Sequence record: LR756502.1
Reading direction: 5' to 3' (one strand)
Length of the DNA stretch: 64,000 nt
The translations under genes were made by a program, and so were the position numbers. The notes below the pieces were generated by a model. It had not been told where the DNA came from. It saw only the letters and a program-made list of their open reading frames with translations, and did no database searches. Numbering within the stretch: the first letter of the stretch is position 1; the number at the start of each line of letters is the position of its first letter. Below are positions 5,380 to 35,705 of the stretch, piece after piece.

Positions 5380-5883
5380 TTATATATTTTTTTTATCTGT
5401 GTCCAGAATAGAATTAATTTTATTATCTCTCTCCTCAAATTTCTCTGTTATATCGGCATATTTTATTGTATAATATGGGTTTAGTGATACTAAATCAACA
5501 TACCTTATTATATAAAATATAACAAATTTTTTCCAAGATCCTTTTTCGAAGAATGCATCCAACTCATCATCTGTATCTAATTTAATAAGCTTTGCAGTAT
5601 ATGACTTCTCAACTATATTGTTATCCTCTACTTTAATTATTGTGAATGATGGTGATGCACATACATATGATATTTTTCTCCAGTGTTTATCCAATACATC
5701 ACCCATCCATATCGATGGATTTACTGATGCTGTGTGTGTATTTGTATTATCATGACACATTCTTAATGAATTATCATATAATATTTTTATTCCTTCTAAG
5801 TTATATTCAGATATTGGGTATATACTTATTTTTTTTGGATCTAATGTCGAATTAACATTACTACTAATTAGTTCTCTAAACAT
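5380..5883 (-). CDS. Hypothetical protein with C-terminal RxxKIxxIL tag
   Basis: Ends FEERDNKINSILDTDKKNI. Confidence 0.7.
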   Translation of the reverse strand: MFRELISSNVNSTLDPKKISIYPISEYNLEGIKILYDNSLRMCHDNTNTHTASVNPSIWMGDVLDKHWRKISYVCASPSFTIIKVEDNNIVEKSYTAKLIKLDTDDELDAFFEKGSWKKFVIFYIIRYVDLVSLNPYYTIKYADITEKFEERDNKINSILDTDKKNI

Positions 5884-6047
5884 ATAAGAATTTTTTTTAT
5901 TTTATTACTTCTAAAAACATTTCGGTTACCAAATATTTTATTGCTTACAAATATATGGTCAGCTGATGCACGCCCTGATGATGATATTATATTAGATGCT
6001 TTTAATATTTTAGAGGCTAGATCTCTTTGAATTTTGGAATTATCCAT
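5868..6047 (-). CDS. Small ORF missed by the track (59 aa) with RxxKIxxIL tag
   Basis: Manual translation MDNSKIQRDLASKILKASNIISSSGRASADHIFVSNKIFGNRNVFRSNKIKKILICLEN*; overlaps both neighbours. Confidence 0.65.
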   Translation of the reverse strand: MDNSKIQRDLASKILKASNIISSSGRASADHIFVSNKIFGNRNVFRSNKIKKILICLEN

Positions 6048-6843
6048 TCACAACCTTTGTTTTCACGCTCCACTTTTCCGGTAGAAAAGAGCAATCATTG
6101 TTATTTATAAAATGGTCTCTCCAAGCTTCTATGAAAATCTGAATATCGGTTATGTTACTCATTACAATTTCACCATGTGTTCTTTTTATAACAGTTGTTT
6201 TGACTTTTGATAACTCTAAAAGTCTCTCCTTGGTCAATCTGTTTATACCAAGTCCGTCCTTTATTATATTCCTCATTCTTCTAATTCTTGATTTTGGGAG
6301 CTTCTCAATATCATCTTTGAATAGTAATGTATTTGCTATTTTGCTATATTTTATTAAATCTTTGTTTTCAAACATTTCACCATTTATCGGTGCTTTATAA
6401 TCAATCGCTAGTTGTTCCTTTAATTTATCAGCACTTCTTTCATATTTTGAGTGACATTTAACACACAATGGTAAAACATCATGAAAGTTGTGTGATTTTA
6501 TAGATTCTGGTAGAAATTTTCTATAACAGTAAGGCACAACATGATGTCTTGTTAAGTACTCCTCAGTACCACAAGACACACATTTGTTAGCCATCTCAGT
6601 TAATCCAAATTCTTTGTTATGATTACCCAAACCCTTTGGTTCAAACCTAAGCCTTACTGTATAGGGGTTCTCATTTATTAGCTCTCCTATTGACTCACCG
6701 GTTTTATTATCAATTGTTTTTAGATACCAGTCGGCTCTTTTTTTATCACATCGGAACATTAGAATATCATCCTTTGATACAACTTGACAATTTCCGTATA
6801 TTTTTCTATCCTTATTTACTCCATAAGATAACTCAAGACTCAT
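6040..6843 (-). CDS. HNH-type nuclease resembling the C-terminal HNH-like domain of eukaryotic EXD2
   Basis: YGNCQ...RCDKKRADWY...VRLRFEP...CVSCG...RHHVVPYCYRKFLP...KSHNFHDVLPLCVKCH. Confidence 0.7.
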   Translation of the reverse strand: MSLELSYGVNKDRKIYGNCQVVSKDDILMFRCDKKRADWYLKTIDNKTGESIGELINENPYTVRLRFEPKGLGNHNKEFGLTEMANKCVSCGTEEYLTRHHVVPYCYRKFLPESIKSHNFHDVLPLCVKCHSKYERSADKLKEQLAIDYKAPINGEMFENKDLIKYSKIANTLLFKDDIEKLPKSRIRRMRNIIKDGLGINRLTKERLLELSKVKTTVIKRTHGEIVMSNITDIQIFIEAWRDHFINNNDCSFLPEKWSVKTKVVNG

Positions 6844-6845
6844 TA

Positions 6846-7394
6846 TTACTTTTCTACTTGGTGTAGATTGAGTTCAATTTCAGTTTTTCTACCGAATATT
6901 AAAACACCAACCTTTATTTTTTGTTTGTCTTCATCTATTGATTCGACAATACCTTTGAATCCACTAAATGGTCCATCATTAACCTTTACTTCCTCGTTTA
7001 TGCAGAATGTGTTGGTTATTTCTTTGCTTTCATTTGCCTCATGTTCTCCCATCATCTTATTAACTTCTGATTGGCTTAATTGTTGGATATCACCAGCTCT
7101 GTTTGTTAAAAATCCAGTTGCTCCATTTAATGATCTAACAAAATGTTTTAGTTCACCGACCGCTGATGTTTCAACAAATATATACCCTGTGTACATAACC
7201 TTTTCTTTTACTACTTTCTTTCCATCTTTCATAAAGAAGGATTTTTCCATAGGAACAAGTACTCTTCCTATTTTGCCAGTAAGATCTCCTTTTTCAGATT
7301 CTTTTCTTAGCTTTTCAGATACTGACTTTTCTCTATTTGATTGTGCTCTTACTACATACCACTTCATAGTGCTGTTTTCCATAATTGTATTCAT
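6846..7394 (-). CDS. nusG: Transcription termination/antitermination factor NusG
   Basis: NGN domain KWYVVRAQSNREKSV...MYTGYIFVE and KOW domain EEVKVNDGPFSGFKGIVE...VLIFGRKTEIEL. Confidence 0.92.
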   Translation of the reverse strand: MNTIMENSTMKWYVVRAQSNREKSVSEKLRKESEKGDLTGKIGRVLVPMEKSFFMKDGKKVVKEKVMYTGYIFVETSAVGELKHFVRSLNGATGFLTNRAGDIQQLSQSEVNKMMGEHEANESKEITNTFCINEEVKVNDGPFSGFKGIVESIDEDKQKIKVGVLIFGRKTEIELNLHQVEK

Positions 7395-7479
7395 TTTTTA
7401 TTATATTGGTTTAATTTAATGTTCTTGGTGTTGGTGGTCTTTACACATAGGTGATCCACATATAATTGACCCGTTGTAT

Positions 7480-7875: not shown

Positions 7876-8310
7876 TTATAGTAATACTTTATCTATCTTT
7901 TTGTCTCTGAACTTCTGTGGGTCTGTAATATAATACTCCCATTTATCTAAATCTTTTATGAACTCTTCTCCAAATAGGTCTAATATATCCTCATCTGGTA
8001 TCTTATATCCGAAATTATATTTCTTTTCTATTGGAATGAAACTACCATTCGACAGTTTATATTCAATCTCACAATTTGCTGGATTAAAATATTGACCAAT
8101 AACTTCTATCCTTTGATATCCATCTATTTTTGAATTTATTTCAAATATCCTGTCTATTATGGTATTTTGGTCTTCTAAATCACTTGTATACCATTCACAA
8201 TATAAACATATTAATTCAACAATATAGGAATTTTTTATTCCAGTTTTAGTTTCAATGATTGGTCTCCATTTTTTTATTGGTCTTTCATCTGTTCTATCTA
8301 CTCTTCTCAT
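7876..8310 (-). CDS. Hypothetical protein with C-terminal tag
   Basis: Ends QKFRDKKIDKVLL. Confidence 0.7.
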   Translation of the reverse strand: MRRVDRTDERPIKKWRPIIETKTGIKNSYIVELICLYCEWYTSDLEDQNTIIDRIFEINSKIDGYQRIEVIGQYFNPANCEIEYKLSNGSFIPIEKKYNFGYKIPDEDILDLFGEEFIKDLDKWEYYITDPQKFRDKKIDKVLL

Positions 8311-9287: not shown

Positions 9288-9314
9288 ATTATACTATAAT
9301 GTGAAGATAAGTTT
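9288..9314 (-). promoter_or_regulatory. AAACTT-N15-TATAAT candidate promoter
   Basis: Same arrangement and spacing at 9711-9737 upstream of the preceding gene. Confidence 0.35.
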
Positions 9315-9705
9315 ATAGTATTGAGTCAATCTTTCTTTCTCTTTCCCATGATACTAAAACAGTATTTAGGTACTTTTCTATTTCTCTTGGGAAATTAACG
9401 TTCTGCTTTTTTACCTCATCATAGAATGCTTTTCCTTGTAGGTTTATCATTGATACGTATAGTGCGGTCATTATATCTTTATATCCATCAACCTCTATAT
9501 CTTTACCGAGTACGTTATATGTTGTCTTTACTGATGCAATTGATAAGTGGTTATTTGTTACTGTAGTTACTGTGGTTGCCATCATGTTCGCTATGGTGTT
9601 GGTAGCAGTAGAACCATACACAATTGATGATTGTGTCAATGTAGATATTGTGAGTGTGCTTGATGTGCTAGATGTTGCGAAGTTCATTCCGATATTTAAA
9701 TTCAT
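9313..9705 (-). CDS. Hypothetical protein, Ser/Thr-rich N-terminus, C-terminal tag
   Basis: Ends SWERERKIDSIL. Confidence 0.7.
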   Translation of the reverse strand: MNLNIGMNFATSSTSSTLTISTLTQSSIVYGSTATNTIANMMATTVTTVTNNHLSIASVKTTYNVLGKDIEVDGYKDIMTALYVSMINLQGKAFYDEVKKQNVNFPREIEKYLNTVLVSWERERKIDSIL

Positions 9706-13281: not shown

Positions 13282-13524
13282 TTACTCTCCTTCCATTTTA
13301 CTAAGTCTTGTGTAATAGTCAGGTATTTCTCTTAGGTGTGACTCCGCTATTTTCTTGTAGAATTCCATTTCGGACCAAGGCATTTGAACATTAAATGATT
13401 CAAGGTAACTATCTAGTTGTCTATATACATCACCATGTTCTGATTCTATCTTGATTCCTATTTCTAGTTGTTCTTGATCAAAATTATTATTTGATTCATT
13501 TATTTTATCTGTAAATTTTCTCAT
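13282..13524 (-). CDS. DUF5661-like small protein with N-terminal leader
   Basis: QLEIGIKIESEH...HLREIPDYYTRLSKME; starts MRKFTDKINES. Confidence 0.6.
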   Translation of the reverse strand: MRKFTDKINESNNNFDQEQLEIGIKIESEHGDVYRQLDSYLESFNVQMPWSEMEFYKKIAESHLREIPDYYTRLSKMEGE

Positions 13525-14239: not shown

Positions 14240-15583
14240 ATGATGATTGAAAAGTCTATATCTGAATTTCTATCGAATGAGTATAAGGAATTCGCAATGT
14301 ATGTTGTTGAAGGTAGAGCAATACCTTCTGTAATTGATGGTTTCAAACCAACTCAGAGAAAAGTAGTTCATGTATCAAACCAGGTTTGGAAGACAGGAAA
14401 TGAAAAATCCCTTAAAGTATTCCAATTGTCTGGTAAGGTTGCTAGTGATTGCTATTATCATCACGGTGATTCTAGTTTGTCAAATGCTATAATAAATATT
14501 GCTCAACGATTTAAGAATAATGCTCCATTACTAGAAGAGATTGGTCAATTTGGATCACTTAGATCTCCACAAGCCAGTGCTCCTCGATATATTGAAACAA
14601 AACTATCTGATAACTTCAGATTACTTTATAAGGATTTTGAATTACTTGATTATAAAGAAGAAGAAGGTGAAGTTATTGAACCTAAATTCTTCCTACCAAT
14701 TATACCAACAGTTTTGATAAATGGTGGGTCCGGTATCGCTGTTGGATTTGCTTCAAATATTTTAAATAGAAATGTTACTGAAATAATAGACTCTTGTGTT
14801 AAAGTTTTAAGTGGTAAAAGAGCAAGTGATGTTAGTCCAAGTCTAAATTCATTCAATGGTACATATACTGTCGATCCAGATAATAGTAAAAGATGGGTTA
14901 TTAGAGGTAAATTTGAAAGAGTAAATACATCAACTGTTAAAATAGTAGAGCTATCACCTTCAATGACATATGAGAAGTATGAAGAGATATTGGATAAACT
15001 TGTTGAGAATAAAGAAATTGTTTCATATGATGATAATTGCAAGGATAACATTGATTATACATTAAAGTTTACTAGAGTTGATTTAGAGGCACTTGATGAT
15101 GATAAGTTATATAAGCTACTTAAGCTTGAAGAGGCACAAACTGAAATATACTCAACACTTGATGAGAGAGGTAAGCTAAAGATATTTGAAGCAACAAGTG
15201 ATATTATTCAATATTTTGTTGACTTTAGACTTACATATTATCACAAGAGGAAAGAGTTTATGCTCGATAAGCTAAACAATGAGTTGAAAATACTTAGTAA
15301 TCGTGGGAGATTTATAAAGGCCATACTTGATGAGAAGATTAAAATAAATAATGTTGCTAAACAACAGATAATTGACCAGATTGAGCAGATTGGTCTAGAG
15401 AAGATTGATGAATCTTATGATTATTTATTAAGAATGCCTATCTACTCATTAACTAAAGAATTATTTGATAAACTGAAGGAGGACTTCTCTGCAAAGAAAG
15501 AAGAGATTCAGAAGTTACAATCAACTGACCCTAAGGATATGTATGTGACTGACTTGTCAGATCTGAAAAAGAAATTCAAATAA
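14240..15583 (+). CDS. Phage type II DNA topoisomerase breakage-reunion subunit (gp52-like)
   Basis: RAIPSVIDGFKPTQRK, YHHGDSSL, catalytic ASAPRYI, PIIPTVLING..GIAVGF, YLLRMPIYSLT. Confidence 0.95.
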   Translation: MMIEKSISEFLSNEYKEFAMYVVEGRAIPSVIDGFKPTQRKVVHVSNQVWKTGNEKSLKVFQLSGKVASDCYYHHGDSSLSNAIINIAQRFKNNAPLLEEIGQFGSLRSPQASAPRYIETKLSDNFRLLYKDFELLDYKEEEGEVIEPKFFLPIIPTVLINGGSGIAVGFASNILNRNVTEIIDSCVKVLSGKRASDVSPSLNSFNGTYTVDPDNSKRWVIRGKFERVNTSTVKIVELSPSMTYEKYEEILDKLVENKEIVSYDDNCKDNIDYTLKFTRVDLEALDDDKLYKLLKLEEAQTEIYSTLDERGKLKIFEATSDIIQYFVDFRLTYYHKRKEFMLDKLNNELKILSNRGRFIKAILDEKIKINNVAKQQIIDQIEQIGLEKIDESYDYLLRMPIYSLTKELFDKLKEDFSAKKEEIQKLQSTDPKDMYVTDLSDLKKKFK

Positions 15584-15891
15584 TGTTTACATTAGTAGAC
15601 CATATATCTCATCGAGATAATCCTTTTGGTTTGATATTTTGGTATGTTATACTAGAAGATGAGAATGGTGATAATTTCTTTGACCATTTCTCCACAGAGG
15701 ACTATGATTCAATTAATCTCAGTGATTCGGTTACTAGAGCAGTTCCAATTGAATTAAGTCACATTGAGTTATATTTTGAAGTTTATTTATCTGGTGATAG
15801 TAAAATGGAAATTAGTCATTACAGAAAAATAGAATCTATAAAGTGTAGATTAGAAAGAGAAAGTAAAATCAATTATATACTGGGACAATGA
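15583..15891 (+). CDS. Hypothetical protein with C-terminal tag
   Basis: Ends RLERESKINYILGQ; coupled via TAATG. Confidence 0.7.
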   Translation: MFTLVDHISHRDNPFGLIFWYVILEDENGDNFFDHFSTEDYDSINLSDSVTRAVPIELSHIELYFEVYLSGDSKMEISHYRKIESIKCRLERESKINYILGQ

Positions 15892-16217
15892 TTAATATTA
15901 AATTTAATGGATGGGAAGTAGTAGCATATTCAAGTGAAGTTGAGCATCACTCAATAAAAGAGATGTTGACAGTTTTTATCTCAAGGGATAATGAATACTA
16001 TTTTATACATGATGAGTTAGATAAAATAAGAGATGTTATTGGTATGCCGAATTATATAAGTGATGATTGGGTAAATTATAACAAGAAGGAGGTAAATGAG
16101 AAGATTTTGGACAAATACATTAAAGAATTCTCCGAAGTTGGGTTAATGGAATCACAATACATTGCATCTGAACTTAAAAGTATTAAAAGAAACCTTATTA
16201 TAAAGAAGATAATATAA
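15888..16217 (+). CDS. Hypothetical protein with variant C-terminal tag
   Basis: Ends SIKRNLIIKKII; ATGA overlap. Confidence 0.7.
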   Translation: MINIKFNGWEVVAYSSEVEHHSIKEMLTVFISRDNEYYFIHDELDKIRDVIGMPNYISDDWVNYNKKEVNEKILDKYIKEFSEVGLMESQYIASELKSIKRNLIIKKII

Positions 16218-16494: not shown

Positions 16495-17088
16495 ATGTTT
16501 CAATCTTCAAAAACAGTTAAGCAGTTATTCTATGCCAATGTTGCAATTTTTATAATTGGTCTTTTACTGGAAGTGATAAATTTCCCATTCTATCAAACAT
16601 TTGCGCTATATCCAAAAGAGGGATTTATGTATCATCAATTGATAACACATCAATTTTTACATGGTGGGTTTATGCATATAGCATTTAATATGTTGGCTCT
16701 TCTTTCAATTGGTGCTCCCGTTGAGGACTATCTTGGTAGAAATAAGTTTATAATATTCTATCTAATGTGTGGTCTTGGATCTGCATTTCTTCACATGTAT
16801 ATGGTTAATTCTTCCGTTCCACTTGTTGGTGCTTCTGGTGCTATATATGGTATTCTTTTAATGTTTGCTATAATATCTCCAAATGAGAAAATATACTTGT
16901 TTGGGTTGATTGGTATGAGAGCGAAATATTTAGTTGGTGTATTATTTGGTGTTGAGATATTATTAGGTTTCTTATCAACTAATGATGGTATTGGTCACTT
17001 TGCACATATTGGTGGTGGGTTAACTAGTATATTACTAATACTTGTTGATAAATATCTTCCTAAAAAAAGAAAGAAAAGATGGTCGTAA
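16495..17088 (+). CDS. Rhomboid family intramembrane serine protease
   Basis: HQFLHGGFMHIAFNM, catalytic GASGAIYG and HFAHIGG; about 6 TM segments. Confidence 0.92.
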   Translation: MFQSSKTVKQLFYANVAIFIIGLLLEVINFPFYQTFALYPKEGFMYHQLITHQFLHGGFMHIAFNMLALLSIGAPVEDYLGRNKFIIFYLMCGLGSAFLHMYMVNSSVPLVGASGAIYGILLMFAIISPNEKIYLFGLIGMRAKYLVGVLFGVEILLGFLSTNDGIGHFAHIGGGLTSILLILVDKYLPKKRKKRWS

Positions 17089-17390
17089 ATATAGGAGATA
17101 CATTTAGAATTGATATGACTGAGGCGGTGAAAATTTTATATCCAAATATTTTGCGATGTAAATTTCCTAATAAGACATTCGTTGTAGAAAGGTTTAGCAA
17201 GAGCTCTAGGTCTGTCTATTATATAGATAATAGAACATCGAGTAAATGTGAGTGTGTGCTTTGTGATATGACTCCACAAGATAAATTCAGTGACCGTAAG
17301 ATGAAATGTGTTTCCGTAAATTTTATCATTATTACTGAAACAAAATTACAGAGAGAAAGAAATATAAAACTTAAACAAATATTAAAATGA
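17079..17390 (+). CDS. Hypothetical protein (Cys cluster) with C-terminal tag
   Basis: CECVLC; ends QRERNIKLKQILK. Confidence 0.7.
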   Translation: MVVNIGDTFRIDMTEAVKILYPNILRCKFPNKTFVVERFSKSSRSVYYIDNRTSSKCECVLCDMTPQDKFSDRKMKCVSVNFIIITETKLQRERNIKLKQILK

Positions 17391-23804: not shown

Positions 23805-23981
23805 ATGAAAACTATCGACAATGATTCAGGTGAATTTGACTTATCACAAGTAACTTTTACTTTCACTTGTGATTATTGGATGCCTACTTTTTCTAACAAG
23901 GAAGAGAATAGGAAGAAGAGGATAGAGAAAATACTGACTAATTTAAATGACAAAGAAGGAACTAAAGGCATTATTCTCTAG
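23805..23981 (+). CDS. Small ORF missed by the track (58 aa) with tag
   Basis: MKTIDNDSGEFDLSQVTFTFTCDYWMPTFSNKEENRKKRIEKILTNLNDKEGTKGIIL*. Confidence 0.55.
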   Translation: MKTIDNDSGEFDLSQVTFTFTCDYWMPTFSNKEENRKKRIEKILTNLNDKEGTKGIIL

Positions 23982-25446
23982 GCCAGATTGGGATGATAAT
24001 ACAATCATCGAGGCTGATAAGATTATATCTAGGATATCAAAAGAGTATCTTGGTTTAGATACCTATCCAAATCAATTTGAGATTGTTTCATCTGAGCAGA
24101 TGTTGGATGCCTATTCACTTATAGGTCTACCTATTTCATACAACCACTGGAAGTTTGGAAAGGACTTCGTAATAAACCAAAATCAATATAAAAAAGGTAA
24201 GATGGGACTGGCATATGAGTTAGTTATAAACTCAAATCCATGTATATCTTATAATATGGAAGACAATACAACTTGTCTAATGGTTCTTGTTTTGGCTCAT
24301 GCTGCTTATGGACACAATCACTTCTTTAAGAATAACTATTTATTCAAACAGTGGACACAAGCAGACTCAATAATTGACTATATGTTGTTTGCTAAGAACT
24401 ACATTTCTAAATGTGAGGAGAAATATGGTTATGAGGAAGTTGAATCGACTCTTGATGCTTGTCACGCTCTAATGAATTATGGTGTTGATAAGTATAAGAA
24501 GCCACGTAAGCTAACTCCTATGGAAGAACAAGAGAGATTAAAAAAGAAGCTAGAGGATGATAGAGTTCTTTTGGATGATATATGGAGAACACTGCCAAAT
24601 TCTGAAAAAGATAAAAAGACTAATCCAAATAGATTTCCATCACAACCAGAAGAAAATATTCTATATTTTATTGAAAAAAACTCTCCTAAATTAAAGGAGT
24701 GGCAAAGAGAGATTGTTCGTATAGTTAGAAAAGTTTCGCAATATTTCTATCCACAAGGTCAGAGTAAGGTTGTTAATGAAGGTTGTGCGACCTTTACACA
24801 CTATGAAATTATAAATAGGATGTATGAGGAGGGATATCTTGATGATGGGTTTATGATGGAGTTCTATCACAACCATTCAAACGTTATATTCCAACCAGCA
24901 TTTGACTCAAAGTATTACTCTGGTATAAATCCATATACCTTAGGCTTTAATATATTCAATGACTTAAAGAGAATGTCTCTTAAGCCAACTGATGAAGATA
25001 AGCATTGGTTTCCTGATATTGCTGGTAACCCTAATTGGCAAGAAACTTTTAGATATATTGTTGAGAATTTCAAGGATGAGACATTTGTTTTGCAATACTT
25101 ATCTCCAAAGGTGATAAGGGATATGAAGTTATTTGCTGTTGATGATAAGAGTGAGAGTAACTACTATGAGGTTACATCAATTCATAATGAGAGTGGGTAT
25201 AAGAAGGTAAGAGAGTCTTTGTCGATGTCATATAATAGGAGTCGATATGTTCCTGATATACAAGTATATCACGTTGATGTGCATGGTGATAGAACAATAT
25301 CACTTGAGTATATCCCTGAGAGTGGTAAGGAATTAGAGGTAAGAGAAGTTGATAAGGTTCTCCCTTATATTAAGTATTTATGGGGATTTCCGGTCAAGGT
25401 TATAAAGAGAGAGAATGGTAAAAAATACGTAATTTCTACCATATAA
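23947..25446 (+). CDS. SpoVR / YcgB family protein
   Basis: YPNQFEIVSSEQMLDAY..IGLPISYNHWKFGK, LAYELVINSNP, AHAAYGHNHFFKNN, YFYPQGQSKVVNEGCATF, NPYTLGF. Confidence 0.92.
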   Translation: MTKKELKALFSRPDWDDNTIIEADKIISRISKEYLGLDTYPNQFEIVSSEQMLDAYSLIGLPISYNHWKFGKDFVINQNQYKKGKMGLAYELVINSNPCISYNMEDNTTCLMVLVLAHAAYGHNHFFKNNYLFKQWTQADSIIDYMLFAKNYISKCEEKYGYEEVESTLDACHALMNYGVDKYKKPRKLTPMEEQERLKKKLEDDRVLLDDIWRTLPNSEKDKKTNPNRFPSQPEENILYFIEKNSPKLKEWQREIVRIVRKVSQYFYPQGQSKVVNEGCATFTHYEIINRMYEEGYLDDGFMMEFYHNHSNVIFQPAFDSKYYSGINPYTLGFNIFNDLKRMSLKPTDEDKHWFPDIAGNPNWQETFRYIVENFKDETFVLQYLSPKVIRDMKLFAVDDKSESNYYEVTSIHNESGYKKVRESLSMSYNRSRYVPDIQVYHVDVHGDRTISLEYIPESGKELEVREVDKVLPYIKYLWGFPVKVIKRENGKKYVISTI

Positions 25447-25486: not shown

Positions 25487-27007
25487 ATGAGCAATCTAAC
25501 AAGAAACAAAATTCTTTCAGTTTTCATTGTACTAAGTACATTGTTTACTCTATTAGGTGTTTTTACTAACATATTTTTCCTAATCCCTTGTGGGTTATCT
25601 ACCCTTGGGTTACTTATTGTTATTAAGGACATTACACAATCAAAACATTCACTTCTAAGAAACTATCCATTGATAGGTAGACTAAGATGGGTATTTGAAC
25701 AAGAAAGAAGTAAAATTCAACAATATTTTGTTGAACATGACACTAACGGTACTCCTTATAACCGTGAGAAGAGATCTGATGTATATCAGAAAGCGAAAAA
25801 AGATATAAACACCACACCATTTGGTACTCAAATGGATGTCTATGAGAATGGATATGAATTTATAAAACATTCTCTATACCCAAAAGATACTGACTCTATA
25901 AAGGAACCAAGAATTAACATTGGATCTAAATTCTGTTCACAACCATATAACGCTAGTGTATTTAATGTTAGTGCTATGAGTTATGGTGCATTATCAGATG
26001 CTGCTGTTAGAGCAATAAATGGTGGTGCTAAGATTGATAGATTTTATCAGAATACTGGTGAGGGTGGTTTGTCTTCATATCATTTAGAGAACGGTGGTGA
26101 TATTTGTTTTCAAATTGGTACTGGATATTTTGGAGCTGGTAAAACAGTTAATGGTAAACGAGTTTTTGATGAAGAAACATTCAAACAAAATGCACTTCGT
26201 AAAGAAGTTAAGATGATTGAGATTAAACTTTCACAAGGTGCTAAACCTGGACATGGTGGTATCCTACCTGCTAAGAAAAATACACAAGAAATTGCAACAA
26301 TTCGTGGTGTTGAACCAGGTGTTGATGTTGTTAGTCCACCATATCATTCATCTTTTAATAGCCCAGAGACTATGTTGAAGTTTATAAAAAAACTTAGAAG
26401 TCTAAGTGGTGGTAAACCAATTGGTATTAAGATGTGTATGGGTGATAATGATGAAGTATTAAATCTAATATGTACAATGAAACGCATTAATACATTTCCT
26501 GACTTCATAACTATAGATGGTGGTGAAGGTGGTACTGGAGCAGCCCCACTTGTTTTCACTAATAGTGTTGGCACACCACTTATTGATTCACTCATTTTCA
26601 TTGACAAACATCTAAGAATTAATGGTCTTAGAGATCAGATTAGAATTATTGCTAGTGGTAAAGCGTCAAATAGCTTTGATGTTATTAAATTAATTTCTCT
26701 TGGTGCTGATGCTGTAAACGCGGCTAGAGCATTTATGTTAAGTCTTGGATGTATTCAAGCAAGAGAGTGTAATAAAAACACTTGTCCTGTTGGGATAGCA
26801 ACACAAAATAAACAACTTATAAAGGGATTAGACCCATCTGAAAAGAAAGTTCGTGTGGCTAATTATCATAACGGTGTTATTCACGAGATAAAAGAGGTAT
26901 TGGGTGCTATGGGGTTGGATTCAACTGAGAACTTAACACCTAGTCATATAAATATCAGAATTGATAAGTCACAAATATTAACATATAAAGAACTATTTAA
27001 ATTATAA
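25487..27007 (+). CDS. FMN-binding glutamate synthase family protein (membrane-anchored, YerD-like)
   Basis: SAMSYGALS, NTGEGG, MIEIKLSQGAKPGHGGILP, DFITIDGGEGGTGAAP, CIQARECNKNTCPVGIATQ; two N-terminal TM helices. Confidence 0.93.
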   Translation: MSNLTRNKILSVFIVLSTLFTLLGVFTNIFFLIPCGLSTLGLLIVIKDITQSKHSLLRNYPLIGRLRWVFEQERSKIQQYFVEHDTNGTPYNREKRSDVYQKAKKDINTTPFGTQMDVYENGYEFIKHSLYPKDTDSIKEPRINIGSKFCSQPYNASVFNVSAMSYGALSDAAVRAINGGAKIDRFYQNTGEGGLSSYHLENGGDICFQIGTGYFGAGKTVNGKRVFDEETFKQNALRKEVKMIEIKLSQGAKPGHGGILPAKKNTQEIATIRGVEPGVDVVSPPYHSSFNSPETMLKFIKKLRSLSGGKPIGIKMCMGDNDEVLNLICTMKRINTFPDFITIDGGEGGTGAAPLVFTNSVGTPLIDSLIFIDKHLRINGLRDQIRIIASGKASNSFDVIKLISLGADAVNAARAFMLSLGCIQARECNKNTCPVGIATQNKQLIKGLDPSEKKVRVANYHNGVIHEIKEVLGAMGLDSTENLTPSHINIRIDKSQILTYKELFKL

Positions 27008-27011: not shown

Positions 27012-27494
27012 ATGGGAGAAGTAACACTATTTATATTTTCACTTTCTATATTAATACTATTATCTGGTAACGTTATTCAGTTTTTTAGGTCCAGTGAGCT
27101 TAGAAATGAATTAAAAAAGGCCAATATGTTGATTATTGATAAAGATAATGAGATCCGTAATACCAATAAATCAAAGGAAGCTATACTGGGTATAGAGCCT
27201 GGGAGTAAAGGAATATTACATGATTTTGCATTACAATATGGATCTGAATCAAAAGGTGATAAGGTTGCTTTCAAAGTAACATTTGAGGTTGATGTTGTTG
27301 ATATATCTCCTGCTAAAATAAAGGTTGTCGCGACTAACTTTACATCATGTGACTCTATTGCAAAAGATCCAAAAAACATTAAGGGTATAATTGAATTTAT
27401 GAATAATAAATGGGTAGATCGTAATTTATTTGAACTAATTGTTGGTGATTCCGAAAGAAGAAATGATAAGTTAAGTAAAATACTTGGGGATTAA
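27012..27494 (+). CDS. Membrane-anchored hypothetical protein with C-terminal tag
   Basis: N-terminal TM, coiled coil; ends ERRNDKLSKILGD. Confidence 0.7.
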   Translation: MGEVTLFIFSLSILILLSGNVIQFFRSSELRNELKKANMLIIDKDNEIRNTNKSKEAILGIEPGSKGILHDFALQYGSESKGDKVAFKVTFEVDVVDISPAKIKVVATNFTSCDSIAKDPKNIKGIIEFMNNKWVDRNLFELIVGDSERRNDKLSKILGD

Positions 27495-27644
27495 ATGGCT
27501 AAAACTGTTAAAAATATTATAAAAATGGACTATACTAGCTTATACTCCAATATCATTTTGTCTCATAATATTATGCCTGAAAGAGTTAGGAGAATTGCCA
27601 AAATTAAAAGAATATTAACAGAGATAGAAAATTTAAATAGATAA
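27495..27644 (+). CDS. Small ORF missed by the track (49 aa) with tag
   Basis: MAKTVKNIIKMDYTSLYSNIILSHNIMPERVRRIAKIKRILTEIENLNR*; abuts both neighbours (TAAATG, TAATG). Confidence 0.65.
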   Translation: MAKTVKNIIKMDYTSLYSNIILSHNIMPERVRRIAKIKRILTEIENLNR

Positions 27645-28018
27645 TGTATTGTATTTGTTGTAAAAAAGATAAATTAAAGCCCAACTCAAATTCCATTCAC
27701 TTAAATTCTGGTTGGTCTGAAGAAGATTATATCTGGAGAATTGATAAAAAAGAAAACCCAGTCGGTAAAAGAACAACAAATAATAGGATGTGGAATGATG
27801 GAATCGTAAATATCATAGATGCTGGATATGGTAGTAGTCATGATACAGATAGCTTTGTAATAGCAATTTGTGATGATTGTATAAAAACAAACCTAGAGGA
27901 TGGTACATTATTATATCATAGTAATTATATGAGTCCGAATGCTCCTTTTGTAGAAGAGGAAGTAAACAAATCTAAACAAATCTATCGTCGCCGTAAAAAC
28001 CTAGACAATTTAGTTTAA
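27644..28018 (+). CDS. Zn-binding hypothetical protein with variant tag
   Basis: MYCICCK...ICDDC; ends YRRRKNLDNLV. Confidence 0.7.
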   Translation: MYCICCKKDKLKPNSNSIHLNSGWSEEDYIWRIDKKENPVGKRTTNNRMWNDGIVNIIDAGYGSSHDTDSFVIAICDDCIKTNLEDGTLLYHSNYMSPNAPFVEEEVNKSKQIYRRRKNLDNLV

Positions 28019-28019: not shown

Positions 28020-28679
28020 ATGTGTATTGCTAATAAAATAAAATCATCATTGGATGAGTATTTGGAGTTCGACTCATCTGAACTATTTGTGCCTGATATA
28101 ACTAAAGTTTTTGGTGGTGCCATACGAGATATTATTGCTAATATGCCAATACATGATGTTGATATTATTTGTGCGTCTAGATCTGCTAAGATGTTGGATT
28201 CAATATTGAAAAATAACGGATATCATTGCGTTGATGGTCTAATTCCAAAAGACCTATCAAGTGTCTATACTGATATTAAAATAATATGTGAGCCAAAAAC
28301 ATATATAAAGGGGATAAAAATAGTTCAGGTTATAAAACCAAGTGGTGCTGCAACTCAACTCAATAACTATATAGATTCTATTGAACGACTTATTTCAAAT
28401 GTTGATATAAGTTGTTGTGGAGTATCATATGATGGTGTTGGTTTAGTTGAGAATGTACCAGATGCTATTCTACATTGTAGAAACAAAGTTTATAAAGTAA
28501 ATAATGGGGCTGAAATGCTAAATAAAAGACTGATACATAGAAAGGCTAAACTAGAAGATAGAGGATGGGAAGAAATAGAAGGTGGTATTCTAAACAATAG
28601 AGATATAAAGATAGATGAAGTATTAAAGGCCGATGCCTATGAAGATGGATATTATGATCATATTAAATCTTGGAAGTAA
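28020..28679 (+). CDS. Nucleotidyltransferase, CCA-adding/poly(A) polymerase head-like, with tag
   Basis: VFGGAIRDII...HDVDII, DISCCGV; NRDIKIDEVL near the C-terminus. Confidence 0.7.
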   Translation: MCIANKIKSSLDEYLEFDSSELFVPDITKVFGGAIRDIIANMPIHDVDIICASRSAKMLDSILKNNGYHCVDGLIPKDLSSVYTDIKIICEPKTYIKGIKIVQVIKPSGAATQLNNYIDSIERLISNVDISCCGVSYDGVGLVENVPDAILHCRNKVYKVNNGAEMLNKRLIHRKAKLEDRGWEEIEGGILNNRDIKIDEVLKADAYEDGYYDHIKSWK

Positions 28680-29185: not shown

Positions 29186-29491
29186 ATGAAAAATACAATA
29201 AAAAATAAGTCGGATATTGATAACCTATTTAAGAATGGTAAGTCCACATATGATAATCTAATTATGCTTAAGTGGGTAGATTCTACTGATACTAAGTATC
29301 TATTTGCTGTTTCCTCTAAGAAATTTAAAAGAGCAGTTGATAGAAATAGGGTTAAGAGATTGATGAGGGAGTCTGTTTCTAAAATATCTATACGTGGTAA
29401 GAGTATTGCTTTTATTCTAAGAGGAGATATTGTACCAACATTTAACGAGATTAATAAATCAATTAGTAATTTAACAAAGACATGGATTTAG
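29186..29491 (+). CDS. rnpA: Ribonuclease P protein component
   Basis: IKNKSDIDNLFKNGKS and RNR motif FAVSSKKFKRAVDRNRVKRLMRES; start reassigned to ATG 29186. Confidence 0.88.
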   Translation: MKNTIKNKSDIDNLFKNGKSTYDNLIMLKWVDSTDTKYLFAVSSKKFKRAVDRNRVKRLMRESVSKISIRGKSIAFILRGDIVPTFNEINKSISNLTKTWI

Positions 29492-30084
29492 GAGATAAAA
29501 CAAAAATAATTCTAATATTGGTTGGGTTAGCTTTAATGGTATATTTAATTATTAAAACGATGCTAGCTATTAGAAATAAGAAGACTGATGGAGGTATCAT
29601 GGGAATACTTGGTGCTGCTGATAGTTTACCAACTGTATTGAAAAAAGTTGAGGCATTTGATGAGAATGCTTATGTCTATGAGATATTTAAGGCTGTATTT
29701 GTTTCTATAGGTCTAGTGGATGATTGGTCAATTGATGTTGGTTGGGATAAAATTCTATTTAAAAAGAAAAAGTCCAATTCAGTAAATGGTGTATGGAAAC
29801 CCGATTCTTCAATAACTCTAAGAGTTGAATATGAATTTGTCGGTGATATTTTTACTATTAAGAAAGTAATTCTAACAGATGAATTGGAGAGGAGAGATTT
29901 TAGATGTTATTCTGATAAGTTGAGTGAGAGTGAGATTCTTATTATATACAATGCCTATTCTGATTCTGTTGATAAGTCAAATGAAGCTAGTAAGGAGGTT
30001 GTTGATAGGAGTCTTTTAAATATTAGAAATATTATTGGTAAGGCAGCTGATAGAGAGGATAAACTAAATAAAATATTAGGATAA
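29482..30084 (+). CDS. Membrane-anchored hypothetical protein with C-terminal tag
   Basis: N-terminal TM; ends ADREDKLNKILG. Confidence 0.7.
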   Translation: MDLGDKTKIILILVGLALMVYLIIKTMLAIRNKKTDGGIMGILGAADSLPTVLKKVEAFDENAYVYEIFKAVFVSIGLVDDWSIDVGWDKILFKKKKSNSVNGVWKPDSSITLRVEYEFVGDIFTIKKVILTDELERRDFRCYSDKLSESEILIIYNAYSDSVDKSNEASKEVVDRSLLNIRNIIGKAADREDKLNKILG

Positions 30085-30998
30085 TGATTATAAAATATGA
30101 TACTATAAAGGAAAATATTAAAATATTTGATGAGGTTAAAAAGTCTCTACCAATTATTAAAAAGTATATTGATGGTGAAGTTTCAATTTCTGCCTTACAA
30201 ACAGTAGGTCTAGGTCCTTTTGGTAACTTCTATGACTACTCAGTAAACCCAGCAAAAAATTACCTTGCTAAACCAGTCCTAGATCCAAAACCAATTATAA
30301 TGGAAGGTATTACTTGGAGAAAACTAAAGGCTATTCTTGTAGAAAATACAACGATAGAAAGGTTTAAGACCTATATTAAGAATAGAACACAAAAACAGTT
30401 TAATGCAATATTAAATAACCCTGATGTATATGATAGACTATTAAATGGTCGTTGGGTTAGAAGACCAAGTAGAAGACGCTCACAGGGCACAAGAGGTGAA
30501 AAGATTAGTTCATTTACCACTTGTCAAATAGAGATAATAAATTATGTAATATTCAATCAAATTGATATTGGTGTTAGCCTACTTGGTTCTAATTGGTTCG
30601 TTGATTCTAAATTAATATTGGATAATACTCTATTGAGAGAGATGACTGTTACCGAGAATTTACTAACATCATTTGTTGATGTTATATCTACATCAAAGAT
30701 AGATTTCAAGAAATTAAACCTTGACTACATTACATCATATATTAGTGATAGTATTAGGAAGTTAATAACTATTGAAAATGATACAAGTATTAAATGTATA
30801 AAGGATTATGGTACTGTCGGATCAATGTTTTTAACTGAAGGTGTTTCGTATGTTGTGTCTGGTTACCATATAAGAAGTGGTTATCTTAATGTTTTGATTA
30901 AAGATGATACTGGTCGACTAAACTACTATCCATTTTCATACTTTGAGGATATGGCATACCATAGAGGTAGTCTATTAGATAGTTTACTTGGTGATTAA
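30084..30998 (+). CDS. Hypothetical protein with variant C-terminal tag
   Basis: Ends YFEDMAYHRGSLLDSLLGD. Confidence 0.7.
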   Translation: MIIKYDTIKENIKIFDEVKKSLPIIKKYIDGEVSISALQTVGLGPFGNFYDYSVNPAKNYLAKPVLDPKPIIMEGITWRKLKAILVENTTIERFKTYIKNRTQKQFNAILNNPDVYDRLLNGRWVRRPSRRRSQGTRGEKISSFTTCQIEIINYVIFNQIDIGVSLLGSNWFVDSKLILDNTLLREMTVTENLLTSFVDVISTSKIDFKKLNLDYITSYISDSIRKLITIENDTSIKCIKDYGTVGSMFLTEGVSYVVSGYHIRSGYLNVLIKDDTGRLNYYPFSYFEDMAYHRGSLLDSLLGD

Positions 30999-31656: not shown

Positions 31657-32067
31657 TTACTCTCCTTCCTCACGAAAATATCCGTCTTCTTCTTCTTCAC
31701 CACTTCCAATGAAGCTTTCCGCATCTTCAATAATATAAACAAGTTCGTCTTGAATAGGGTTATTATTTTGCCAGAAGAATAATCTCATTATTTCCTCACC
31801 ATCCTTACTAAGTAAGTCAGTTATACCCATTGCCCAATCTAAACAGGATCCTTTTCTAATTTGATCTCCTTGCTTAGCAATAATTATACCATCTCTAACT
31901 TCTAGTATTTTACTTCCTGGGAAATAATCCTTTATGATATTAACAACCGATTCAATATCATTTTCAGTTGGTTTATAGATTTTAACATGTTTCATATCTA
32001 GCTTAAGATTCTTACCACTTGATTTAGTGTCCTCGTTACTTTCGTTAAATTTATTTAAGTGTTTCAT
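31657..32067 (-). CDS. Hypothetical protein with N-terminal leader
   Basis: Likely ATG at 32067: MKHLNKFNES. Confidence 0.65.
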   Translation of the reverse strand: MKHLNKFNESNEDTKSSGKNLKLDMKHVKIYKPTENDIESVVNIIKDYFPGSKILEVRDGIIIAKQGDQIRKGSCLDWAMGITDLLSKDGEEIMRLFFWQNNNPIQDELVYIIEDAESFIGSGEEEEDGYFREEGE

Positions 32068-32074
32068 ATAAAAT

Positions 32075-32665: not shown

Positions 32666-32715
32666 ATCATTAAACTTTATTTCGTTTCTTATATATTAAA
32701 AATATGAATTCTATT

Positions 32716-32746: not shown

Positions 32747-32750
32747 CAAC

Positions 32751-33626: not shown

Positions 33627-33640
33627 ACCCGACTTTTCTT
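33613..33640. terminator. Intrinsic terminator between convergent genes
   Basis: aaaagtcgagtt/aacccgactttt hairpin flanked by A and T runs. Confidence 0.65.
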
Positions 33641-33646
33641 AATTTT

Positions 33647-33883: not shown

Positions 33884-33940
33884 AATAACAATTATTTTTT
33901 ATTATATATTCGTAAATTACATCTACCTTGTTTTCATAAA

Positions 33941-33965
33941 AAAACCCACTCAATGAGTGGGTTTT
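33941..33965. terminator. Intrinsic terminator
   Basis: aaaacccactca-a-tgagtgggtttt perfect stem. Confidence 0.8.
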
Positions 33966-33985
33966 AAAAGAATTATATTATTCTG

Positions 33986-34522
33986 TTATTTTTTAACTTT
34001 CTTATCTGCAACCTTCTTAGGAGCCTTTTTAGGTTCTTCAACTTTCTTAGCTGCAACCTTTTTAGGAGCTGCTTTCTTAGCCGCAACCTTCTTAGCTGGT
34101 TTCTTTACTTCTTCCTTCTTAGCTGGTGACTTATCCTCTTTCTTTTTAGCAATAAAGTCTTTATTATCAACCTCATTTTTTTCTTCATACTTTTCTTTAG
34201 CATCCTTAGCTTCTGCTTCAGTTAATCCAATATAGTAATATGGGTAGTTTTCGTTATAGTGGTAGTTCTTTACTAAGATATGCTTAACACCTACCTTTTT
34301 ATCCGCTTTTAAGTCGTGTAATGCGTTTAGAACCTGATCAGTAGTATATTTTCCCTTAAGATATGCAATAATACCAGCTTGTGAATATGCTGACTTTTCA
34401 GTTGGCCAGTTTTTGCTACTCATTGTGACAGTTGGATTGCTGTTAAGCATCTTAAGAATCTCTTCTTTCGCGTCATCTTTTTTAGCTTCATTGATGAACT
34501 GATTATATCTTTTCACTTCCAT
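33986..34522 (-). CDS. Protein with N-terminal leader and Lys/Ala/Pro-rich histone-H1-like tail
   Basis: Starts MEVKRYNQFINEAKK; ends PAKKVAAKKAAPKKVAAKKVEEPKKAPKKVADKKVKK. Confidence 0.8.
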   Translation of the reverse strand: MEVKRYNQFINEAKKDDAKEEILKMLNSNPTVTMSSKNWPTEKSAYSQAGIIAYLKGKYTTDQVLNALHDLKADKKVGVKHILVKNYHYNENYPYYYIGLTEAEAKDAKEKYEEKNEVDNKDFIAKKKEDKSPAKKEEVKKPAKKVAAKKAAPKKVAAKKVEEPKKAPKKVADKKVKK

Positions 34523-34607
34523 ATTTTATATTATTTTTATAACTTATATATTAAATATAAACTATTGATTTTTTTATTTTTTACTTAAATTTTTGTATAT
34601 TTATATT

Positions 34608-35237
34608 ATGGACTATAAATTAAAGGAAATATCAAATAGAATATGGTTAGTCGAGTTTGATGACTACTATAATCTATCAATGACATTCTTGAGGTATCAA
34701 GAGTTCTACGAGTCACCAAATGAAAAATTCTTCAGAACCCCATTCCTTATAAAAGAATATGTTGATTGGTATTCCTCTGGTGAAGATTTTACTTATCATC
34801 TAGATTGGATGGGATTTAATATACCGTCCAATTTTATTATTGAGTGTCAAAGTAATATACCTGATATAAATGAGTGGGACATTGTAATGTCTGATATAGT
34901 TAATAAAATAAAGGATAAGTCTGGTGATTTGTTTTACCTAATTGGTATAAAGGATGGTGATAATGATGTTCTTAGACATGAAATGGCACATGGTTTATTC
35001 TATACAAATGATAGTTATAAATCAGAAATGATGGATTTGTATAGAAGTTTGCCGGATAGTATTATAGAAAGAATTAATAATTACCTAATTGATACTGGTG
35101 GTTATTCCGAGGATGTTTTCATAGATGAAACACAATCATATATGGCTACCGGCTTACCAAATGTTCTTTCTAAACAGAAGGATATTAAATTGGAGAGTAT
35201 TAAATTCAGTAATGTATTTAAAAAATATATAGATTAA
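34608..35237 (+). CDS. Hypothetical protein with HExxH zincin-like motif
   Basis: VLRHEMAHGLFY...DETQSY; ATG at 34608. Confidence 0.65.
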   Translation: MDYKLKEISNRIWLVEFDDYYNLSMTFLRYQEFYESPNEKFFRTPFLIKEYVDWYSSGEDFTYHLDWMGFNIPSNFIIECQSNIPDINEWDIVMSDIVNKIKDKSGDLFYLIGIKDGDNDVLRHEMAHGLFYTNDSYKSEMMDLYRSLPDSIIERINNYLIDTGGYSEDVFIDETQSYMATGLPNVLSKQKDIKLESIKFSNVFKKYID

Positions 35238-35380
35238 TGAATATAATTGCTTCGATAGTTGCGTTTTTGACAATATGTGAGAATATTTATAAAATATTCA
35301 CGACAGAAAGTAATGGTGAGAGAATATTGAGAATTGCTATAATGGCTTTTATGTTGATAATATTGTGTATTTTCCTGTAA
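35237..35380 (+). CDS. Small two-TM membrane protein missed by the track (47 aa)
   Basis: MNIIASIVAFLTICENIYKIFTTESNGERILRIAIMAFMLIILCIFL*; TAATG coupling. Confidence 0.55.
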   Translation: MNIIASIVAFLTICENIYKIFTTESNGERILRIAIMAFMLIILCIFL

Positions 35381-35393
35381 TGGCATTTACCAA

Positions 35394-35705
35394 TTACTTT
35401 AGTATACTATCAATAACTTTATTCCTAAAATCATCTAATATAATAAAGTTACCATCTGCAAAATCTGAGTAACAACCAAATCCATGATTTTCAAAATACA
35501 ATACTTCCATTCCGTAGTTTGAATCGTTTTCATCAATCTTGTAGTCAATTATGGTCTTCTTTGAAATTGTGTAGTGTTTCCCCTTATCAAATGACTTCCC
35601 ATGTACTTCTTCCTCTTTGGATGAATATTTACCACCAATATAGATAAGAACAGTGCCTTCGTTATATTTACTATTCTCTAGGACATCTTTGATATAATCA
35701 TTCAT
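35394..35705 (-). CDS. Hypothetical protein with variant C-terminal tag
   Basis: Ends DDFRNKVIDSILK. Confidence 0.7.
   Translation of the reverse strand: MNDYIKDVLENSKYNEGTVLIYIGGKYSSKEEEVHGKSFDKGKHYTISKKTIIDYKIDENDSNYGMEVLYFENHGFGCYSDFADGNFIILDDFRNKVIDSILK

Follow-up and report, generated by a model that had tools for sequence, protein, structure and literature searches.

We analysed a 64,000-nucleotide stretch of DNA (hereafter the window), which is identical to positions 496001-560000 of LR756502.1, the unannotated 642,428-bp genome of an uncultured phage. Proteins encoded in the window end in a short peptide close to R-x-x-K-[IL]-x-x-[IV]-L, which we call the C-tag. The C-tag is a portable C-terminal helix that is conserved at the protein level, clade-wide and virus-specific, and it is carried by unrelated and mostly orphan accessory proteins. 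It might serve as a docking helix for one shared and probably phage-encoded partner, a reading that we place a little below even odds (about 0.45). LR756502 ranks with the four largest genomes curated by Al-Shayeb et al. (2020) and belongs to the Mahaphage clade, for which Bacteroidetes hosts are predicted (PMC7162821).

Abundance and position of the C-tag in the LR756502 genome

The first-pass annotation of the window had counted about 15 carriers, which is far too low for the scale of the phenomenon, with about 116 carriers in the genome. Among 970 LR756502 proteins from simple longest open reading frame (ORF) calls, by which one carrier has 89 aa instead of the 132 aa in public calls, the strict motif matched 66 times, and 52 of the 66 matches lie within 8 residues of the stop codon. 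Two hundred per-protein shuffles gave a mean of 1.36 strict matches anywhere and 0.065 at C-termini. A composition artefact is ruled out by these shuffles. A weight matrix with a threshold of >10 bits, applied to tags within 20 aa of the end, found 116 of the 970 proteins (12%) to be C-terminally tagged, where a shuffled proteome gives 6.4 false proteins. Further matrix iterations drifted, and the first-round matrix was kept; its threshold lets in a few false carriers, such as a DNA methyltransferase. The placement at protein ends that the annotation had noted is borne out, with 52 C-terminal matches against 0.065 expected and 116 terminal against 26 internal copies.

One residue follows the final Leu in 43 carriers, two in 20, three in 10 and none in 8; in 108 of the 116 carriers, the tail after the motif consists of 1-19 mostly polar or charged residues (overall range 0-19). 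Carriers have a median size of 116 aa vs 155 aa for other proteins, and they are scattered over the genome, with the highest density at 620-642 kb plus 0-20 kb. A logo of 180 tags from two genomes defines a peptide of ~13 residues, [K or hydrophobic]-[S/Q]-x-[I/L/V]-R(99%)-[D/E/N]-x-K(85%)-[I/L]-[N/D/K/E]-x-[I/V/L]-L-x, with next to no information farther upstream. The variant K-L-x-x-[IL]-G-I-stop coexists with the main form, and the two swap between orthologues. One 198-aa ORF (LR756502 397265-397861, in locus L008) is tagged twice, internally at residue 99 and again at its end, and looks like a fusion of two tagged genes; other internal tags are followed by 50-130 more residues.

C-tags within the window

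A six-frame scan of the window with the regular expression R..K[IL]..[IV]L returned 11 matches. Ten lie in long ORFs at 0-17 aa from the stop, and the eleventh (17860-17886) falls in a 10-codon junk frame. The shuffle expectation for the ~80 window proteins, scaled from the whole-genome shuffles, is ~0.005 C-terminal matches. All 11 near-exact copies and four variants listed in the first-pass annotation are present; the positions given there were the low coordinates of the ORFs and not those of the motifs. The tags are, by motif coordinates, strand, distance to the stop, ORF and matrix score:

5404-5430, - strand: RDNKINSIL, 7 aa ahead of the stop, ORF 5380-5883 (167 aa, orphan), 27.4 bits
5886-5912, - strand: RSNKIKKIL, 5 aa ahead of the stop, mini-ORF 5868-6047 (59 aa), 18.7 bits
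7882-7908, - strand: RDKKIDKVL, 1 aa ahead of the stop, ORF 7876-8310 (144 aa), 20.8 bits
9316-9342, - strand: RERKIDSIL, exact C-terminus, ORF 9313-9705 (130 aa), 24.1 bits
15856-15882, + strand: RESKINYIL, 2 aa ahead of the stop, ORF 15583-15891 (102 aa), 21.7 bits
16188-16214, + strand: variant RNLIIKKII, exact C-terminus, ORF 15888-16217 (109 aa)
17358-17384, + strand: RNIKLKQIL, 1 aa ahead of the stop, Cys-rich ORF 17079-17390 (103 aa), 23.8 bits
23910-23936, + strand: borderline RKKRIEKIL, 14 aa ahead of the stop, ORF 23805-23981 (58 aa), 10.4 bits
27459-27485, + strand: RNDKLSKIL, 2 aa ahead of the stop, ORF 27012-27494 (160 aa, N-terminal membrane segment)
27591-27617, + strand: RIAKIKRIL, 8 aa ahead of the stop, mini-ORF 27495-27644 (49 aa), 17.2 bits
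27989-28015, + strand: possible variant RRKNLDNLV, exact C-terminus, Cys-rich ORF 27644-28018 (124 aa), below 6 bits
28599-28625, + strand: RDIKIDEVL, 17 aa ahead of the stop, ORF 28020-28679 (219 aa), 21.4 bits
30052-30078, + strand: REDKLNKIL, 1 aa ahead of the stop, ORF 29482-30084 (200 aa, N-terminal membrane segment), 22.6 bits
30963-30989, + strand: possible variant RGSLLDSLL, 2 aa ahead of the stop, ORF 30084-30998 (304 aa), below 6 bits
35400-35426, - strand: variant RNKVIDSIL, 1 aa ahead of the stop, ORF 35394-35705 (103 aa), 14.1 bits

Ten of the near-exact copies fit the expression in long ORFs, whereas RKKRIEKIL has R instead of K at motif position 4, and the coding status of its ORF is uncertain because of a 35-nt overlap with the start of the SpoVR gene. 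Two of the four variants hold up: 16 orthologues of the RNLIIKKII protein end exactly with R-x-[LFI]-x-I-x-x-I-[IL]-stop, behind a linker of variable length, and RNKVIDSIL reaches 14.1 bits. RRKNLDNLV and RGSLLDSLL are plausible but unproven as tag variants. The nucleotidyltransferase named among the carriers is less secure than the annotation suggested, as ORF 28020-28679 has a weak nucleotidyltransferase-like match (head domain of PolyA_pol, E=0.006) below the Pfam cutoff. The tagged C-termini of the two membrane proteins are probably cytoplasmic, judging from the basic residues after their N-terminal segments.

Conservation of the C-tag as protein

Orthologue families of the window genes retain the tag. 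It is kept as EERDNK[IL]xxIL in 8 orthologues of ORF 5380-5883, its Arg is one of 6 invariant columns in the family of ORF 7876-8310 (8 members), and in the family of ORF 9313-9705 (16-17 orthologues) the 6 invariant columns include R122 and K125. The orthologue of ORF 27012-27494 in the sister genome LR745206 ends with RDAKLRKLGIE. In the family alignments, the N-terminal parts and the linker preceding the helix vary in length, and the tag Arg (in one family also the Lys) is invariant.

The carriers as a whole evolve fast, since 40 of the 116 (34%) have a reciprocal best match in LR745206, compared with 46% of other proteins, and orthologue identity is 42% for carriers vs 55% for other proteins. 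Of these 40 orthologues, 29 pass the matrix, and 9 of the remaining 11 show a visible variant tag. In 38 LR756502-LR745206 pairs, the bodies are 41.8% identical, and R1 of the tag is conserved in every pair (100%), 16 of which use different codons for it; identity is 71% at K4, 76% at [IL]5, 82% at L9 and 34-39% at the x positions.

The DNA of the ten window tags varies freely at synonymous positions (AAA/AAG; ATT/ATA/ATC/CTT/TTA/CTA; CTG/CTT/TTA/CTA), and the codons of conserved residues vary within the genome and between orthologues. The tag is conserved as protein; the purifying selection evident in these comparisons acts on its amino acids. A DNA element, whether cassette, promoter or terminator, was rejected because synonymous positions vary within and between genomes.

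Diversity of the carriers

The claim that the bodies of the carriers differ completely is well supported. BLASTP among the 15 window carriers found no similarity outside the tag, and hhalign of three orthologue-family profiles aligned 13-24 columns around the tag only. Once the tags are removed, BLAST groups the 116 bodies into 111 clusters, in which some pairs are paralogues. Pfam searches of 115 LR756502 carriers matched some family for about six, with one member each; in one 214-aa carrier, a flavokinase domain covers residues 2-128 and the tag stands at the end. PHROGs and NCBIfam added an EF-Tu fragment and a family-B polymerase fragment, which suggests that fragments of core proteins were captured and fitted with the tag. 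The EF-Tu match has E about 1e-6, and the family-B DNA polymerase match of another carrier is weak. Among 102 carriers from relatives, matches were found to Cse60, a DUF1660 zinc ribbon (residues 2-71, followed by the tag), PP-binding (acyl carrier protein (ACP)-like) and zinc ribbons. A membrane-like segment occurs in about 9% of carriers, as often as in other proteins.

The tag is modular, as had been proposed: it sits on bodies as unrelated as flavokinase, DUF1660, Cse60, an ACP-like protein, an EF-Tu fragment and membrane proteins, and mostly on orphans. No curated family in Pfam, PHROGs or NCBIfam matches more than two members among the 115 and 102 carriers scanned, and none covers the tag, in agreement with the earlier statement that it has no named family. 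A literature search found no relevant description of a C-terminal motif in huge phages, and phmmer of the tag peptide against the Protein Data Bank (PDB) returned nothing. One hidden paralogue family was rejected as an explanation on three grounds: 111 body clusters for 116 carriers, hhalign alignments of the tags only, and a GD start in 4 of the 116.

Distribution among phages and cells

LR745206 contains 109 C-terminal tags in 942 proteins. Loci of further relatives were retrieved via the topoisomerase gene: 27 loci with >=70% topoisomerase identity hold 85 tags in 688 genes, and 53 loci with 53-59% identity have no C-terminal tags in the 1174 genes of their 20-kb core-gene neighbourhoods. 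Single internal matches in these 53 loci come from a chance-like stretch inside topoisomerase itself. In the more distant LR756504, a 636-kb Mahaphage with a 44% identical topoisomerase, arrays of 70-110-aa proteins end with a variant tag, [FW]-x-T-[LA]-x-E-[YH]-R-K-x-x-I-[EK]-[DE]-L-[LI]-stop (EYRKxxIEDLL) or N-x-R-K-N-R-I-x-N-L-N. Given this variant, the tag predates the LR756502 subclade and has drifted. One such region (L108, LR756504 1-9000) holds tandem paralogues of 70-110 aa with GD[IR][VL]xI starts (SH3/KOW-like) and the variant tag; its arrays show an apparent expansion of tagged gene families.

We scanned IMG/VR with one DNA rendering of RDxKI[DN]xIL and obtained at least 120 loci. 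Among the matches listed, 70 of 120 loci carry C-terminal tags, and nearly all of these tagged loci encode proteins that are 35-65% identical to LR756502 proteins. The tagged share reaches 40-50% in some arrays (L203, and L210 with RExKLNxLGI-stop). The same DNA pattern was run as a control against cellular genomes of 185,579 species and gave 120 matches in scattered taxa. A stop follows within 8 aa in three of these 120 cellular matches, as expected by chance, vs 67 of 122 viral ones among the matches listed. Judged by these matches, the C-terminal use of the motif is a property of these phages and not of cells. One 91-aa ORF at 357-632 of L246, from a Bacteroidia metagenome-assembled genome (JANYIQ010000011.1), ends with …SQSRDKKINLILRK among cellular genes (YifB-like, trigger factor); it may be a chance match or a tag-bearing gene in a candidate host. 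A search of a 5.8-billion-protein set with the last 40 residues found 6 close orthologues only and is therefore uninformative on the spread of the tag. No cultured relatives were found among GenBank phages, where the matches were LR756502 and LR745206 only.

Predicted structure of the tagged C-terminus

AlphaFold2 models agree with the helix proposed in the first-pass annotation, with terminal helices at 107-129 of 130 residues and 146-165 of 167. For the family of ORF 9313-9705 (16 sequences), the N-terminal half of the model is rich in Ser/Thr and disordered. The C-terminal domain is confidently modelled (pLDDT 85-90) and consists of a hairpin and two helices followed by a final long helix (107-129) with the tag at its end (pLDDT 78-90). 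The model for the family of ORF 5380-5883 is poor (pLDDT 60) and also ends with a helix (146-165). Foldseek of the 9313-9705 model against the PDB and BFVD found nothing below E=0.25.

On a helical wheel with 100 degrees per residue, where the angles are arithmetic on the logo and no measured structure, positions 0, 8, 5 and 9 fall at 0, 80, 140 and 180 degrees. Lys4 at 40 degrees and Arg1 at 100 degrees lie inside this hydrophobic arc, and the mostly acidic positions 2 and 6 point away at 200-240 degrees.

Gene-start motifs and a second, N-terminal tag

Two motifs are enriched 10- to 17-fold upstream of LR756502 genes. The box tttTtctTATATTTGTa / TATATTTGTA, or TAnnTTTG, precedes 79 genes and is of host type, TAnnTTTG being the flavobacterial sigma-A -7 box (PMC9723704). 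The phage-type motif tTAATATATA (TAATATATA) is found at 179 genes, 5-8 nt ahead of the ATG, among them topoisomerase and most of the large genes; it may act as a promoter of near-leaderless mRNAs or as a signal for the start of translation. Each gene was classed by the nearest motif upstream along its strand, a crude measure in which timing is inferred from the motifs. By this measure, the upstream motif is the host-type box for 47% of tagged vs 28% of untagged genes (Fisher p=3.5e-5) and TAATATATA alone for 14% of tagged vs 50% of untagged genes (p=1.5e-14). The carriers appear to lean to early, host-promoter units. Tagged genes overlap or abut the next gene more often than others (49% vs 33%) and more often use the stop codon TGA (27% vs 16%). 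A termination or coupling signal was rejected, as the packing difference is only modest, being slight in comparison with other small genes, and is explained by dense arrays.

A second tag, M-K-[HY]-[LI]-K-x-[YF]-x-[IL]-F-E-[SD] (MKHLKxYKIFE), is found at the N-terminus of 66 LR756502 proteins (~7%) vs 1.0 in shuffles, and also occurs in LR745206 (45 proteins) and LR756504. Among its carriers, 58 of 66 belong to the phage-motif (TAATATATA, L) class. The two tags never occur on one protein, either in LR756502 (116 C-tagged, 66 N-tagged, p=2.6e-4) or in LR745206 (p=0.007). The length (~11 residues) and the I/L-x-E ending of the N-tag match the T4 capsid targeting sequence (CTS) and the gp21 cleavage site (PMC9026906, PMC3012670), and by this analogy the N-tag appears to be a better candidate than the C-tag for capsid targeting. 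The window contains two N-tags and five looser forms:

48849-49472, - strand: N-tag, MKNIKNYNDF…
58932-60002, + strand: N-tag, MKHLRNFDKF…
3919-4335, - strand: looser N-tag, MKHIKTYKETNDV
4348-4902, - strand: looser N-tag, MKIRKFTEFINEEF
13282-13524, - strand: looser N-tag, MRKFTDKINESNNN
31657-32067, - strand: looser N-tag, MKHLNKFNESNED
33986-34522, - strand: looser N-tag, MEVKRYNQFINEAKK

Comparison with known terminal signals

In T4, the CTS of IPI-III and Alt is a peptide of ~10 residues that forms the sole common part of diverse, fast-evolving accessory or anti-defence proteins and acts as a transplantable address (PMC3012670, PMC9026906). The C-tag is likewise a short peptide and the only shared part of diverse proteins, in a phage that has a T4-type topoisomerase II. 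However, the T4 CTS stands at the N-terminus, is removed by the prohead protease, which cuts behind L/I-x-E, and directs a handful of late proteins to the head, whereas the C-tag lies 0-19 aa from the C-terminus of about 116 proteins, has no L/I-x-E bordering it in the logo and is encoded by genes depleted from units with the phage-specific gene-start motif; MKHLKxYKIFE is the closer match. Encapsulin cargo-loading peptides are C-terminal, follow variable, flexible linkers rich in G/S/P on unrelated cargo and bind an HK97-fold shell, whose gene adjoins that of the cargo, and the encapsulation peptides of microcompartments are amphipathic terminal helices of ~18 aa that are attached by a poorly conserved linker and dock on a shell protein. 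The C-tag resembles the former in its C-terminal position on unrelated proteins, and the latter in its predicted helix and in the pre-helix linker of varying length within families. Unlike encapsulin peptides, it has no LxIGSL[KR]-type Gly/Ser core, and its carriers are genome-wide, lean early and are 1-2 orders of magnitude more numerous.

LxxLL motifs (NR boxes) and PIP boxes allow numerous unrelated clients to bind a single hub, and in archaea the PIP box is usually located at the extreme C-terminus. The C-tag has the same hydrophobic spacing, [IL]-x-x-[IL]-L, but it contains neither the Gln nor the aromatic residues of the PIP box (Qxx[LIM]xx[FY][FY]) or of QL[SD]LF, and its Arg and Lys have no counterpart there. 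The C-terminal signals of Dot/Icm (type IVB) secretion mark ~10% of the proteome, on fast-evolving and mostly orphan effectors. The C-tag is reminiscent of them in proteome share and carrier type, and of ssrA/MuA degrons in the logic that a terminal peptide decides the fate of a protein. These signals and degrons are compositional or have a non-polar extreme end, whereas the C-tag is a defined helical motif with polar tails, and no secretion machine or protease is linked to it. The ssrA/ClpX degron differs further in its non-polar free C-terminus, its tmRNA, which this phage lacks, and its cellular use, of which the 120 cellular pattern matches give no sign for the C-tag. The membrane-targeting helix of MinD/FtsA has an unbroken hydrophobic face and a net positive charge, whereas the hydrophobic arc of the C-tag is interrupted by Arg and Lys; its net charge is about 0, as the two mostly acidic positions balance these residues. 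The CHU_C domain of type IX secretion is also a C-terminal sorting signal in a Bacteroidetes context. Unlike CHU_C (PF13585), a folded domain of ~80 aa on secreted proteins with signal peptides, the C-tag has 13 aa and is found on cytoplasmic proteins or on membrane proteins whose C-terminus is probably inside. No match to PF13585 was found on the scanned tagged proteins, and the true CHU_C of the window is on the protein encoded at 18378-23390.

Possible function and alternative explanations

We propose that Ile/Leu at positions 0, +5, +8 and +9 would form one face of the helix, with Arg(+1) and Lys(+4) in the middle of it and the acidic or variable positions facing outward. The helix might insert into a groove with an acidic pocket on one cytoplasmic receptor, comparable to the docking of LxxLL, BH3 and PIP helices. 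A receptor encoded by the phage, or a host protein that it hijacks, is more likely than a host sorting component; a host signal or host degron is less likely, and a phage receptor favoured, because the motif is not placed at C-termini in cellular genomes. The C-tag could label accessory proteins for a second destination or fate distinct from that of the N-tag, as its carriers lean to host-type promoter units and never carry the N-tag. We prefer recruitment to a hub or site built by the phage as this fate, with hand-over to a protease as the other possibility. A more far-reaching version is two-address sorting, in which the N-tag as a propeptide (MKHLKxYKIFE|S) would send ~7% of the proteome to the prohead and the C-terminal helix would send a further 12%, the fast-evolving accessory or effector proteins, via one phage-encoded receptor to a second phage-built destination, which could be a compartment, a scaffold or a dedicated unfoldase. 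We regard this version as tentative and rather doubtful.

Several points weigh against the docking model. No receptor has been found, and the phage is uncultured. The present evidence does not separate docking from degradation or self-association. Docking alone would not require a position within 1-2 residues of the end, and 26 internal copies in LR756502 pass the weight matrix. The promoter walk is crude, 39% of the tagged genes have no class, and five tagged window genes lie in L units. The tag may also pack partly in cis instead of hanging free in ORF 9313-9705, since it ends the long helix of a folded domain in this sole confident model.

Among the alternatives, a C-terminal degron, by which a protease, unfoldase or adaptor would clear early accessory proteins together later in a long infection, is unlikely, though the most probable of them. 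The position near the C-terminus with very short tails, the lean of the carriers to early units and the harm that small accessory proteins could cause by persisting would all suit it, and the lambda regulators CII, N and O are kept short-lived by host proteases. However, the motif is followed by 0-19 polar residues, unlike degrons of the ssrA type, which depend on a free non-polar end. The genome lacks a tmRNA, C-terminal placement of the motif was not seen in cellular genomes, no candidate protease came to light, and enzymes (flavokinase) and genes of L-class units are tagged as well. The tags could instead bind each other, lending avidity to small binding domains or joining many carriers in mixed assemblies or condensates, without a separate receptor. 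The motif is self-complementary in charge (Arg and Lys vs two acidic positions) around a hydrophobic stripe and lies within a long terminal helix in the 9313-9705 model, whose top fold matches are of the ZapA type with a long C-terminal oligomerising helix. These matches are not significant (E=0.25), and the hydrophobic positions 0, 5, 8 and 9 make no heptad, Arg in the middle of a hydrophobic face is unusual in coiled-coil cores, and the conserved stretch spans only about 13 residues; we consider self-association improbable.

Slightly less probable again is common descent, with the tag as the last signature of one ancient, hyper-diverged family of small proteins, that is, an inherited structural end-helix with no common partner. 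The tandem arrays in LR756504 of visibly paralogous 70-110-aa tagged proteins with GD[IR][VL]xI starts favour it, as do the strand-like aromatic stretch and T/S-x-x-E cap ahead of the helix in many carriers and the paralogous pairs. Yet the tags occur on demonstrably different folds and architectures, profile comparisons align the tag only, the GD start is found in 4 of the 116 LR756502 carriers without enrichment, and a solvent-exposed Arg would not stay invariant on unrelated bodies if the helix were purely structural. We think still less of a signal for packaging and ejection, with carriers loaded into the head and injected as first-wave effectors. A short tag common to diverse, fast-evolving small proteins would recall the T4 internal proteins (PMC3012670, PMC9026906). 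The depletion of tagged genes (14% vs 50%) from units with the TAATATATA motif counts against packaging, and the N-terminal MK[HY][LI]Kx[YF]x[IL]FE, with 58 of 66 in L-class units and never together with the C-tag, agrees more closely with the T4 model. The 12% share of the proteome, which is reminiscent of effector repertoires, and the C-terminal position of encapsulin cargo-loading peptides are on the side of packaging. Very improbable is a nucleic-acid or translation signal (promoter, recombination cassette or termination-reinitiation) or a nascent-peptide effect at the stop. The closer packing (49% vs 33%), the use of TGA (27% vs 16%) and the peak of tail length at 1 codon are in its favour, but the codons of conserved residues differ freely within the genome and between orthologues, tails span 0-19 residues, 26 copies are internal, and the packing difference is expected from dense gene arrays.

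If two-address sorting were true, it would be a proteome-wide sorting code of a kind not known in any bacterial virus. Huge phages have hundreds of orphan genes that resist functional sorting. With one label of 13 residues on ~116 of them per genome and a second on ~66 others, there is a first handle on this dark matter; the labels predict shared partners or destinations that could be retrieved with the peptide. Were the C-tag an address, very large phages would organise their proteome by sorting signals as cells do, and the tag could serve as a portable label for delivering cargo to that destination. It is also a specific clade marker for metagenomes.

Other genes of the window and the genome

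The window encodes T4-type topoisomerase II subunits, NusG, a 5'-3' exonuclease, a rhomboid protease, a NIF phosphatase, SpoVR and a SprB-repeat protein, a content that fits a Mahaphage with a predicted Bacteroidetes host. Cargo uncommon in phages lies amid the tagged genes:

6846-7394, - strand: NusG homologue
16495-17088, + strand: rhomboid intramembrane protease
17387-17953, + strand: NIF/FCP1-like phosphatase
23947-25446, + strand: SpoVR
25487-27007, + strand: glutamate-synthase-domain protein

The 1670-aa product of the gene at 18378-23390 (+ strand) combines 12 SprB repeats with a PKD domain and the type IX secretion signal CHU_C. It looks like a gliding-motility adhesin-like protein that would exploit the type IX secretion system of the host, and its presence is consistent with a Bacteroidetes host. 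A search for tmRNA in the LR756502 genome found none. The genome has 46 tRNA genes, most of them clustered in L008 23174-41227 and L009 1555-35174 (about 373-435 kb), and two further tRNA genes lie at about 581.7-582.4 kb (L012). The 1469-aa protein encoded at 38749-43158 of the window (- strand) has the C-terminus …KDVSFDFLFS, and the C-tagged protein at LR756502 70200-70607 has …ELDFLFKWS immediately ahead of its tag; we take the FDFLFS and ELDFLFKWS endings to resemble the sliding-clamp-binding tails of T4-type phages.

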